The notes under the pieces are model-generated. The model was not told the DNA's origin. It saw only the letters and a list, made by a program, of their open reading frames with translations, and searched no databases. A stretch of DNA of 64,000 nucleotides from positions 186,001 through 250,000 of the forward strand of contig JAANOX010000279.1 in assembly GCA_020184695.1 (NCBI GenBank), in the 5' to 3' direction. Position 1 is the first letter of the stretch. Every line of letters begins with the position of its first letter. Shown piece after piece: positions 11,389 to 15,530 of the stretch. Source of the stretch: Histomonas meleagridis 2922-C6/04-290x. Its lineage: Eukaryota; Protista; Parabasalia. Both the position numbers and the translations under genes were made by a program.

Positions 11389-12204
11389 TTATTCTGTTTT
11401 TGCACTTATTCTTTTTTCATTTTTTTGAGTTTTGGTTTTTGTTACATTTAAATTTTTATTTTCTTGATCATTAAATTCAATTTTTTTTGTTTTTTGTTTT
11501 GGTTCAACGCTTTTGCTTCTTTTAGGTTTATGATCTCGAGTTAACGGCACATCCTGTTTAAATGCAATTTGCTTTTTGCCTTCGGTTTTGCGTTTGGATT
11601 TAGTTTTATAAATTGAATTTTTGGCAATTTCTTCGCTCCGTTTGTCAATAAAACGAAGGTGAATCGGTTCAGTTTGGAAATTTTCATTCATTTGGTGAGC
11701 ATCGTTTTTATGTGTGGTGCTTTTTTCTTGACGATTAAGGAAATCTTGGAACGAGGTTCGTGTTGATCGTGTAGATATGGATCTTCTAGTAGAAGACAAA
11801 CTCTCACCGCGCGAAGAAATTGATTTGTTGGGTTGTTTGTCAGGATTAGACCTTTTCCATATTGGATCAATTTTCTTATTTTGGAGATATTTTTTGTTTT
11901 CTCTAGAACATAAAGAGCTATGTGTAGGTAAATCATTTTTAGATTGCATTGATGGGAGATGAGTTTCTATTTGAGAAATAAGTTTCCCATCTTGATCCCA
12001 AAACTGTTCATTTGTTTTTGAACGAATGATTGGTATCATCTTTGATCTTTTTGGTGAAATGGAATCTTCAATTTGGTTTTTATATTTTTGATTTACTCTT
12101 TCCCTTAAAAGAGCTGTTCTTCTACTTGGCGAGCTTTGGTTCGTGCCTTTAGAAATACTTGACACAGAATTAGCTCTTTTTAATGCAGAGAAAGAATGCG
12201 ACAT
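11389..12204 (-). CDS. Hypothetical basic, S/K-rich low-complexity protein
   Basis: Long open frame; first ATG at 12204 (MSHSFSALKR); no domain recognised. Confidence 0.65.
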   Translation of the reverse strand: MSHSFSALKRANSVSSISKGTNQSSPSRRTALLRERVNQKYKNQIEDSISPKRSKMIPIIRSKTNEQFWDQDGKLISQIETHLPSMQSKNDLPTHSSLCSRENKKYLQNKKIDPIWKRSNPDKQPNKSISSRGESLSSTRRSISTRSTRTSFQDFLNRQEKSTTHKNDAHQMNENFQTEPIHLRFIDKRSEEIAKNSIYKTKSKRKTEGKKQIAFKQDVPLTRDHKPKRSKSVEPKQKTKKIEFNDQENKNLNVTKTKTQKNEKRISAKTE

Positions 12205-12441
12205 ATTGGGAAGATGCACGTTAAGAATTTTTTATATAAATAAAAAAATACTTTTCAACATTTCTTTCATTAGACATATAAAATGATTCTTTGAATTTAT
12301 TAGAAGCTTATGCGTAAAACACTTCAAGTGATTATATTTATTTAATCTGCTCGTTACAAATCAATAATAAATTGTTAATCATATTAAATATTTCTTACCA
12401 AAATTATTGTTGAAATGATTTAAATGTCTTTTAGTTGGATT

Positions 12442-15400
12442 TTAAGCTTTGTAGAGATCGTTTTTGTTGATTGCACCAGTACAGCCGCCATTGTGATAAA
12501 TAACTGCTCTGTTACCATTAATTTCTCCAACCACAAAAACTGCATTATACACCCAGTTATCCCAGTGATAGTTTTGACCATAAACTTTTGCTCCTACTCT
12601 GACCCTAACTCTGTCGCCAACTCTGATTTCTCTTCTTTCTCTTTCAATTCTCTCTCTTTCTTCTCTTGCCTTTCTTTCTCTTTCTGCTGCTTCTCTTGCC
12701 TCTCTTGCCTTTCTTTCTCTCTCTTCTCTTTCCATTCTTTCTCTTCTTTCTCTCTCTTCTTTTTCTCTTCTTGCCTTTCTTTCTCTCTCTTCTCTTTCCA
12801 TTCTTTCTCTTCTTTCTCTCTCTTCTCTTTCCATTCTTTCTCTTCTTTCTCTCTCTTCTCTTTCCATTCTTTCTCTTCTTTCTCTCTCTTCTCTTTCTCT
12901 TCTTTCTCTTTCTTTTTTGATACCATCTATTTTTCTATGTACATCATCTGCTGTTGTATTTACAATTGAAGTAACATCTTGAATAACTTGATTTTTATGA
13001 GCGCTGTCATTAGGGGGAATTTGATTGAAAAATCCTTGTGTATTAATAATTTGGTTTTTCAATTGATCGCGATTAATTTCAATAAGTTGATTTGGTGTTT
13101 TATCAGCAGATTTAGCTATTTGCGTTGCTTGATTTTACACCTTGTTCTAATTTCTGCAAACGCTGGTTTCTTTTGAACGTTTGCATTATATTCATTGCAA
13201 TATTTTTTGCTAACTTCTTTAAGCTTATTATTTAAATCGTTTTTATGATTGTTTGGAAAGTTTTCATATGTTACTTGTTTCGAAATAATATCATTAAATA
13301 TTTGGTTTTCATCAACTTTAGGTGATTCATCACGATAATTACTTGCTCTTGATTTTGCATCAATAAATTGCTTTGCAAATCCATCAGCAATTTTAATTTT
13401 ACTATCAATTAATGCTTGAAGTTTTTGTTTTGAGTTCCTTTGTCGAGTGAATTCATTAGTACTCTCTGCACTAATTTTCTTAATTAAATCACTAATTAAT
13501 TTTATTTTATCAGATCCTTTAACATCTTCATTTTTAATTGGAACTTGACTTTTAATGTATGTTTCAATCTTCTCAGAAGTACATGAATTTGGATCAATAT
13601 CTTCAAATACAATTTTACCATTTAGATTTTGCTTGATAAATTCAGATGCTTTGTTAATAAACATTTGTCTATATGCTTCAAATATTGATGCCCATGATCT
13701 ATACTTATCTTTGTTAATACTTCCATGTACATATTTAGCATATTTTAATATTTGATTTTTGATAAGATTATGTCGAGTTTCATTAAGCTGAATACCATCA
13801 AAATATTGCTTAATAAATATCGGAATTTTTTCGTTTGTGTAATTTTCTGGCTTCTTAACTAATACATCAAAATCTTCTTTGTAATAAACATTTTGGAACA
13901 TGTTTTGATAATCAATAAGAATAATACTTTTAATTTCATCATATTTTTGAGCTGAAAATTGATCCCATTTTGGAAGTGCTGAATAAGCGTTATTGAATAT
14001 TATTGTTATACGGTTAATAATTATAGATATTGTATTGTTAAGTTCACTTGATTTATATTCTTTCATATAATCAAGTAATTGTTGATTATTATAATTCTTA
14101 ATGATCCCATCACATATTTGTTGTATATGTGTAGTATCAAATAAATTTTTGTCAACATCTTCTTGAAATGATTTACTTTTCATTAAAGAAAGAATTTGAT
14201 TTGATGCATTTAAAACTATTTCATCAGATGTTAATGTTTCTGTCAAATCCTCTATATGTATTGTTAATTGTTCATTAGCATTTGACTTTATTTGTATACA
14301 AGCATTTGTAAATTGAATAGTAATATATTCTTTAATTAAATTATTATACATTTCAAGTGCCTCTTTTGAAAATGAATTAACTAAGAAATCATTTGCAACA
14401 TTATTATCTTTTAATATATTTAAACAAAATGTAAAATCTTGTTCTAATAATTTGATACACTTTGGAATATAAACTTGAAGTTCTTCATCAAAAACTTGCT
14501 TAAATATATTTGATAGGCTAGAATTAAAATCTGATTTAAATGATGGGATTACTTTGAACTTCGAAAAGAATTTGTAATATTCTTCTATATATGAACATAA
14601 TGTTTGCCCATCAATTTTAGGTCTACTTTTTATTGTATCATTTATCAAAGTTACTATATCTTGTAATGATTTCCAATAAACATTAAGGCAAACATCATCT
14701 TGAGGAACATCATTACTGCATTGATATGGTCCGCATATAATAATATCTATATCATCAAGATATATTTTTGGTATATTGTTATCAACAAAAAAGTCAGAGA
14801 AAATCCTTTGTAAAGTTTGTTCATATGATTTTCTGTTTTTATTAGTATTACGGAAATTATTACGATCAATGGTATATCCGCATGCAGTAGAAAAGATTGC
14901 TGTCTTTGGATTTGGTGTTTTTAGTTTTGTTTTCATGAATTCAGAAAGCATAAACTTATTTATAAGTTGAGAAACATCATTTGTTTTAGGTGGGCCATTT
15001 GTAATAGAGATAGTAATTGTTGCAACTTGGAATAAAGTAAGAATCCCAGAAATTAGATATTGTGAAGAACCTTGAAGTGATTCAAATCCTTCTGTATCAC
15101 AAAAGAAAAGGTCACAATCTTCTGTATTACTTTTGTTTTCAACACCGCATACTTCTAGTAACTTATGAAGTCTAATTGGACCATAGATATTACATCCAAC
15201 TGTAATACTATTTGCTGTGTTTGCGGCTTTGAATGGTTCTTGAATAACATAGGTCTTTTTATTGCCTATAATTCCATGTATAAGCTGATTTAAAGTTGTA
15301 CTTTTCCCACTTCTTGTTGTTCCATAAAAAACAATCAGATGGGGATAATTTGCATTCTTAAAGGCATCTATTACCTCTTGATTTATTAAGGGCACACCAT

Positions 15401-15530
15401 TCAATAAAATGATAAAGTCCATCATCTTCTCCCTTTTGTGCATCATGATCAAACAAATAAAATGATGTGAACATTTAAAGTTGTCACAAATTTTTCGGCA
15501 AATTTTTACTCCTTTGACAAAAACAATCAT
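12442..15530 (-). CDS. Guanylate-binding-protein/atlastin-like large GTPase with long helical region, E/R-rich helix and C-terminal SH3-like domain; 1-nt frameshift near 13135
   Basis: P-loop GTTRSGKS and FCDTEG in ORF 15530-13116. The frame of the downstream ORF is open from about 13135 (NQATQIAKSAD...) to 12442. One extra A in TGTAAAATCAA joins the two. Confidence 0.72.
12620..12920 (-). repeat. 33-bp coding tandem repeat encoding (ERERRERMERE)n, probable single alpha-helix
   Basis: Repeated unit tctcttctctttccattctttctcttctttctc on the plus strand; translation is almost entirely E/R. Confidence 0.85.

Follow-up and report, generated by a model that had tools for sequence, protein, structure and literature searches.

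Organization of the locus

The analysed window is a 64,000-nucleotide (nt) stretch from the parabasalid Histomonas meleagridis 2922-C6/04-290x (contig JAANOX010000279.1, positions 186,001 to 250,000, forward strand). Coordinates without a contig prefix are positions within this window. Between 15530 and 12442, its minus strand carries two overlapping open reading frames (ORFs). The first corresponds to a GBP/atlastin-like large GTPase with a helical body, and the second to the continuation of that body, a glutamate/arginine (E/R)-rich segment, and a small SH3-like domain. The parts of the locus are as follows:

13116-15530, minus strand: ORF1, 804 codons, with its stop codon TAG at 13118-13116
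14526..15425, minus strand: predicted GBP/atlastin-type large GTPase domain, approximately residues 1-300 as counted from the ATG at 15425
13119..14525, minus strand: helical body or stalk, approximately residues 301-769 of ORF1
13116..13134, minus strand: frame break, made up of the ORF1 TAG (13118-13116) and a 16-nt overlap of the two frames (13134-13119), as read from the sequence
12913..13134, minus strand: second-frame stretch of 74 residues that continues the helical body, devoid of ATG/Met
12628..12912, minus strand: E/R-rich segment, 95 residues in 11-residue (33-nt) repeats, as read from the translation
12445..12627, minus strand: terminal SH3-like domain, 61 residues, followed by the stop codon at 12442-12444

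According to alignment with relatives, the likely start of ORF1 is the ATG at 15425, which gives a protein of 769 residues. The second frame opens after a TAA (13137-13135) and stays open from 13134 to 12445 (230 codons), with no ATG upstream of the E/R repeat. The two frames are offset by 1 nt, both are open only across 13134-13119, and no intergenic or promoter space separates them. A run of four A (13136-13133) adjoins the frame break. No canonical slippery heptamer for programmed -1 frameshifting was found at the break. A 23-nt GT..AG stretch (13138-13116) was considered as an intron that might link the frames and was rejected, as it fits the Trichomonas type B motifs poorly (PMC12316389) and has no CTAAC branch site. 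Inspection of the break likewise revealed no candidate for a 17-nt micro-intron with RT...TT ends.

For the assembly of this attenuated strain, nanopore reads were used, with Illumina reads for polishing, and its authors call it highly accurate; its GC content is 28.8%, and the parasite was cultured with E. coli (PMC8529796). In four runs from 2023, which by our guess are RNA, 47-59% of the sampled words of the locus are present, which is compatible with transcription. An exact look-up of ORF1 and of a 73-amino-acid (aa) paralog, described below, returned no record in public assemblies.

The GTPase domain and the helical body

As judged from sequence and predicted structure, the N-terminus of ORF1 is a GBP/atlastin-class large GTPase domain. 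ORF1 has the P-loop GTTRSGKS, with the internal Arg found in GBPs, and the G3 motif DTEG (in FFCDTEGF), both of which are conserved in its relatives. An AlphaFold2 (AF2) model of residues 1-332 reached a predicted local distance difference test (pLDDT) value of 74.7. When this model was compared to PDB using Foldseek, the large GTPase domain of hGBP1 was matched with E 2.4e-9, and the top 50 rows were all GBP1/2/5, atlastin-1/3, or RNF112, with template modelling (TM) scores of 0.45-0.63. A profile built from ten family members retrieved GBP5 (6.6e-5), GBP2 (9.4e-5), and then GBP1 from the PDB sequences (E range 6.6e-5 to 6e-3), the alignment covering the N-terminal hairpin and the P-loop of these three proteins. 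The language-model features of the query in the ESM Atlas point to GBP clusters at 0.96. The GTPase assignment made in the initial annotation of this stretch is thus confirmed by fold and by profile.

The long helical body which had been annotated behind the GTPase is also present, being supported by homology to helical relatives and by helices from residue 245 onward in the structure model of residues 1-332. For the segment that follows, nearly all of the 95 residues are E, R, or K, and comparable E/R/K segments precede the terminal modules of the relatives. An E/R segment does occur where it had been placed; that it forms a single helix is suggested by its composition. We presume that it is an ER/K single alpha-helix which acts as a spacer of about 14 nm if fully helical.

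The terminal domain belongs to a family of lysin C-terminal modules

When 1.84 billion proteins were searched with a profile of the terminal domain, 203 matches were obtained at E<=1e-3 (28 at E<=1e-10, best 4.4e-25). Wall hydrolases of the GH25, amidase, CHAP, or M23 type make up most of the matching proteins, and these carry one to three copies of the domain at their C-terminus. Among the 70 best matches, the catalytic families of peptidoglycan hydrolases account for 46 Pfam matches (GH25, 14; Amidase_2, 13; Amidase_3, 9; CHAP, 4; glucosaminidase, 2; M23, 2; NlpC/P60, 1; Phage_lysozyme2, 1). Companion domains in these 70 proteins are LysM, SPOR, SH3_3, and CW_7. SH3_3 occurs as a separate domain beside the terminal domain, and the two families are distinct. 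The position is terminal as a rule, with 142 of 180 domain copies falling within the C-terminal fifth of their protein. The family consensus, KVGDxVxVxxGAKVYG...SWVY...VxEIxGDRxVI...G.VTGAV...DL, fits the motif from Firmicutes and phage hydrolases which the initial annotation had given, and lysins were retrieved as it had predicted. No eukaryotic KOW, Tudor, or SH3 family was found among the checked matches of the profile search. A word-index search with the 73-aa paralog gave no match. P0012, a Pectobacterium Ig-like repeat protein, was set aside as a contaminating match, since it showed repeated partial matches only.

The AF2 model of the terminal domain is a five-stranded SH3-like barrel (pLDDT 78). 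A structure search in the ESM Atlas retrieved nearly exclusively wall hydrolases from phages and Bacillota (Amidase_2 with or without SPOR, GH25, tail lysozyme, CHAP), with TM scores of 0.70-0.79 over 60-66 residues. The predicted barrel and its lysin-like context are thus borne out by models, whereas the comparison with solved folds does not single out the bacterial modules: a PDB-wide VIA comparison gave Z 6.2-7.5 to KOW, SH3b, GW, and Tudor domains, and KOW (7.5) and the SH3b of listerial autolysin and LytB (6.9) are to be read as a tie. Foldseek gave no match for the terminal domain in PDB or BFVD at E<=0.001. The HERC2 Mib domain, which came up in the PDB sequence search (E 0.74), was dropped as an identity of the terminal domain, this being a chance-level row.

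Stand-alone versions of the domain occur in Histomonas as two near-identical, ATG-initiated ORFs of 73 aa on contig C277 (L002:1471-1692, plus strand; L003:1498-1719, minus strand). They consist of little beyond the SH3-like domain, are 71% identical to the copy in the window, and show 6 nt of difference between the two of them (one synonymous, five non-synonymous). Compared to these paralogs, the window domain shows a ratio of non-synonymous to synonymous substitution rates (dN/dS) of about 0.08-0.1 (dN 0.19, dS saturated), which points to purifying selection. Judged by its sequence family and the company which that family keeps, the terminal domain is of the lysin C-terminal, putatively cell-wall-binding type.

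Evidence for one gene by descent

The arrangement in the window indicates that the locus is, by descent, one gene for GTPase, stalk, E/R spacer, and SH3-like module. We base this on homology that spans the break, the absence of an ATG in the second frame upstream of the E/R repeat, the domain order in paralogs, single-ORF relatives, and purifying selection. With respect to the break, the tail of ORF1 aligns to positions 10-68 of a stalk profile built from the relatives, and the start of the second frame aligns, in the same order, to positions 91-127, the latter match being weak (8.6 bits).

Decayed paralogs on C82 and C17 retain the order of GTPase, body, and domain; in the C82 copy, an HRxID motif and a short E/R stretch precede the domain. 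As the E/R stretch of the C82 copy is very short, the 95 residues of repeat in the window seem to have arisen by expansion at a later time. Stop-riddled copies of the gene for GTPase plus domain are found at L007/L005 (C82:3754-5028), L004/L016 (C17:470032-470350), L009/L012 (C14:167141-167515), and L015 (C153). As regards the paralog C-termini, for which the initial annotation had proposed a survey, the domain is kept in the decayed C82 and C17 copies, and the intact paralogs of 469-488 aa have no tail. These tail-less GBP-like paralogs (L008:1192-2658, L010:1216-2673, and L014:1216-2625, all on the minus strand) have the P-loops GKTQTGKT, GKAQTGKS, and GKHQTGKS, none of which contains the internal Arg; the DT of DTEG is missing from one copy.

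In the metagenomic protein P0011 (761 aa), a single ORF encodes a homologous GBP-like GTPase (E 2e-10), a coiled coil, a proline linker, and then the SH3-like domain. Its terminal domain is 66% identical to that of the window, while its GTPase is distant (25% over 148 aa). P0158 has a layout like that of P0011, with GBP-like GTPase and SH3-like domain in one ORF. The fusion of GTPase and SH3-like domain that had been annotated thus stands as one gene by descent; as a reading of the assembly it does not, since the assembled sequence has two frames with a 1-nt offset. We infer a single polypeptide from this locus, which requires that the 1-base offset is a length error in the assembly or is bypassed.

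Relatives with other terminal modules

A word-index search with ORF1 identified six metagenomic proteins (P0001-P0006) of 1031-1152 aa, with 27-28% identity over 97-99% of the query. These share a common plan and differ in their last 40-130 residues. P0001 ends in a CW_7 repeat (E 6.7e-12) and P0006 in a ricin-type beta-trefoil (ricin-B) lectin domain (E 7.8e-9), while P0002-P0005 carry a third type of module with sub-threshold similarity to DUF3597. The query also resembles an ESM Atlas cluster with 94 member proteins, which are about 1076 aa long and have CW_7 in 99% of cases. The contigs of P0001-P0006 are from rumen metagenomes and have a GC content of 22-25%. That of P0002 terminates in the repeat (CCCCAAT)n, of which rumen-ciliate telomeres consist, and represents the end of a ciliate macronuclear chromosome.

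Some of these contigs carry additional genes. Just upstream of P0001, on a rumen contig with 22.5% GC, is the end of another gene with three more CW_7 repeats (L019:2-582), which suggests tandem paralogs of the P0001 family. Beside P0158 there are a gene for a second large P-loop GTPase (979 aa; L024:1473-4412, minus strand) and a gene with BspA-type leucine-rich repeats (L024:1-1119, minus strand); these neighbors hint at a parabasalid or Entamoeba-like protist as the source of the contig.

Probable lateral origin of the terminal module

The family of the terminal domain is overwhelmingly from bacteria and phages, with the few eukaryotic copies nested inside. Because the family is otherwise made up of C-terminal repeats of peptidoglycan hydrolases from phages and Bacillota, we consider that the terminal module probably came from bacteria or phages, and the lateral acquisition that had been suggested for it is thus upheld by the family's distribution. 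In the domain tree, the eukaryotic copies form one group of 14 rows, supported by a Shimodaira-Hasegawa-like approximate likelihood ratio test (SH-aLRT) value of 90, inside a starred clade (SH-aLRT 95) with Amidase_2, GH25, and NlpC/P60 lysins. This tree (62 columns, 182 rows) is poorly resolved and allows a single eukaryotic clade without proving one. The eukaryotic copies retain the conserved core of the family.

The module is found in other contexts as well. In Tritrichomonas musculus KAK8888783.1 (P0185), an unrelated N-terminal region that includes a coiled coil comes before it. P0185 and P0031 are proteins of 334-358 aa which end in the domain and have, besides it, a three-fold coiled-coil repeat and an N-terminal region of no recognised type. 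Parabasalids have therefore shuffled the SH3-like module onto several scaffolds. The metagenomic P0021 (100 aa) is made up of E/R helix and domain only. A sparsely coding contig of 2.1 kb from a JGI metagenome (42% GC) has two domain copies about 880 nt apart (L023:802-984 and 1687-1860). One of these corresponds to P0010, a protein of 63 aa, and the motif VIYHNGxCTG is common to it and to Histomonas.

A candidate bacteria-directed GTPase

Taken together, we judge it probable, with a fair degree of doubt, that the locus represents a modular, cytosolic GBP-like GTPase with a laterally acquired, lysin-type tail which targets it to bacteria. The terminal module would bind peptidoglycan or a wall-associated polymer, either on bacteria that come into contact with the cytosol, for instance through escape or phagosome rupture, or on an endosymbiont. 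The E/R spacer would hold this binding module about 14 nm away from the stalk, and GTP-dependent dimerisation of the GTPase domains could then assemble oligomers into a coat or tether on the bacterium, or on damaged phagosomes, in the manner of human GBP1 on Gram-negative bacteria. A lysin-type wall-binding module on a rigid, charged helix would thus replace the C-terminal device by which GBPs target lipid or lipopolysaccharide (LPS). Ligand, localisation, and oligomerisation of the fused protein, and its antibacterial or symbiont-related role, are inferred. The targeting role is supported by relatives which carry a CW_7, ricin B, or DUF3597-like module at the same terminal position. Histomonas requires live bacteria in culture (PMC8529796).

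Several observations weigh against this interpretation. In the assembly, GTPase and tail are in two frames and there is no continuous ORF. The protein has no signal peptide, whereas lysin binding modules do their work outside the cytoplasm, which would restrict the encounter of module and ligand to bacteria exposed to the cytosol. The Pfam model for GBP (PF02263) gave no match at E<=1 or at E<=10, and only generic P-loop families below their cut-off were obtained. The G4 motif of GBPs, (T/A)(L/V)RD, was not recognised in the alignment, which has no RD at the expected strand and only a conserved Asp column. As to the terminal domain, its family is unnamed in Pfam (even at E<=10), PHROGs, and NCBIfam, and it matches no named SH3b family (SH3_3, SH3_5); PDB sequence searches, run both with the domain and with a profile of 46 members, yielded chance-level rows only and thus no solved relative. 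Because the family has neither a name nor a solved relative, wall binding by the terminal domain is argued from context, and a wall-binding function of this family is putative throughout.

The frame break itself has two alternative explanations. If the 1-base offset is real, the window copy may be a recently inactivated pseudogene, which would yield at most a truncated GTPase without tail, the architecture being a record of past function. That several paralogous copies are clearly dead fits such a young pseudogene: at least four other copies of the gene family have decayed and have many stops (C82, C17, C14, C153). The Illumina polishing of an assembly described as highly accurate (PMC8529796) also speaks for a real offset. 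However, about 3 kb of sequence from a genome with 28% GC show this one disruption only, frames of 804 and 230 codons being otherwise open; the catalytic motifs and the core residues of the domain are intact; the domain has a dN/dS of about 0.1 compared to its paralogs; and the break adjoins an A4 run, which is a typical site of nanopore length errors. We thus regard recent inactivation as rather unlikely. A still less probable explanation, to which we attach little weight, is that there are two genes, one for a tail-less GBP-like GTPase (ORF1) and one for a small E/R-helix/SH3-like protein which starts at a Met inside the repeat. Precedents for both halves exist in the tail-less paralogs of 469-488 aa, in the two stand-alone ORFs on C277, and in P0021. 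Such a gene pair would leave unaccounted for the 74 ATG-less codons through which the second frame is open upstream of the repeat, up to the ORF1 stop, and which align with the stalk of the relatives; nor is there an intergenic spacer that could hold a promoter.

It may also be that the protein is fused as proposed and that the SH3-like module has been re-used for a ligand which is not bacterial (the parasite's own glycans, the cytoskeleton, or a protein), so that the GTPase would serve membrane remodelling or trafficking. The fold would allow for this, as its similarity in PDB to KOW, Tudor, and eukaryotic SH3 (Z 7.5-6.2) equals that to bacterial SH3b (Z 6.9), and so would the joining of the domain to an unrelated, coiled-coil-bearing N-terminal region in Tritrichomonas musculus; a cytosolic location speaks against routine contact with peptidoglycan. 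On the other hand, the same position is independently occupied in relatives by CW_7, a repeat known to bind peptidoglycan, and by a ricin-type lectin, and the eukaryotic copies keep the conserved core of the family. We consider re-use for a non-bacterial ligand unlikely, and the targeting of bacteria by the terminal module remains our preferred interpretation.

Comparison with known systems

Animal GBPs are targeted by LPS binding and through a CaaX box. Those of human (hGBP1/2/5) coat cytosolic Gram-negative bacteria (PMC12091997). The Histomonas protein resembles animal GBPs in its large GTPase fold with N-terminal beta-hairpin, GxxRxGKS P-loop, and DTEG, in its long helical extension, and in having a C-terminal targeting device. 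In contrast to them, it is only about 15% identical, has no match to Pfam GBP or GBP_C, has neither a CaaX box nor a polybasic tail, and its G4 motif is unrecognised; its targeting would rely not on LPS binding and a lipid anchor but on a folded domain which binds the wall and sits on an E/R helix.

The SH3b modules of phage endolysins and Bacillota autolysins (SH3_3 of Psm from phiSM101, SH3b of LytB) likewise have an SH3-like barrel, are terminal, occur in one to three copies, and are attached to GH25, Amidase_2/3, CHAP, M23, or NlpC/P60 catalytic domains, whereas the Histomonas domain belongs to a distinct, unnamed sequence family. Laterally acquired wall-targeting modules under selection are also found in the antibacterial toolkit of trichomonads (NlpC/P60, GH19, and GH25 with SH3b or LysM; PMC6299479, PMC12612818). 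That toolkit consists of secreted hydrolases with signal peptides, while the Histomonas module sits on a cytosolic GTPase devoid of a hydrolase domain. The overall plan is shared by P0001-P0006, P0011, P0157, and P0158, which have a GBP-like GTPase, a helical stalk, a charged helix or coiled coil, and a small terminal binding module; P0001-P0006 differ by having CW_7, a DUF3597-like module, or ricin B in place of the SH3-like module, which the P0011 group does possess.

Full-text literature searches retrieved no description of protist GBP-like GTPases joined to wall-binding modules, and the word GTPase is absent from PMC12612818, in which the trichomonad toolkit was described in 2025. We put forward, tentatively and with more doubt than for the Histomonas protein alone, that parabasalids, rumen ciliates, and further anaerobic protists of the gut may have a class of cell-autonomous sensors of bacteria that has gone unrecognised, in which a rigid charged helix joins a GBP-like GTPase to interchangeable receptors for microbial glycans, acquired laterally (lysin SH3-like module, CW_7, DUF3597-like module, or ricin-B lectin). 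If so, a pattern-recognition receptor and a GBP effector would be united in one polypeptide, for use in defence, prey handling, or symbiont control. GBPs are central to cell-autonomous immunity of animals. A receptor that is swapped between lineages on a GBP-like GTPase would give a simple model of ligand-directed GBP assembly and would extend bacteria-directed large GTPases to protists which live on or among bacteria. For Histomonas, the locus points to a concrete molecule at the interface between parasite and bacteria; it also singles out an uncharacterised family of lysin C-terminal domains.

Downstream of the locus, the next ORF on the minus strand (11389-12219) has 276 codons and is Ser/Lys-rich and of low complexity.

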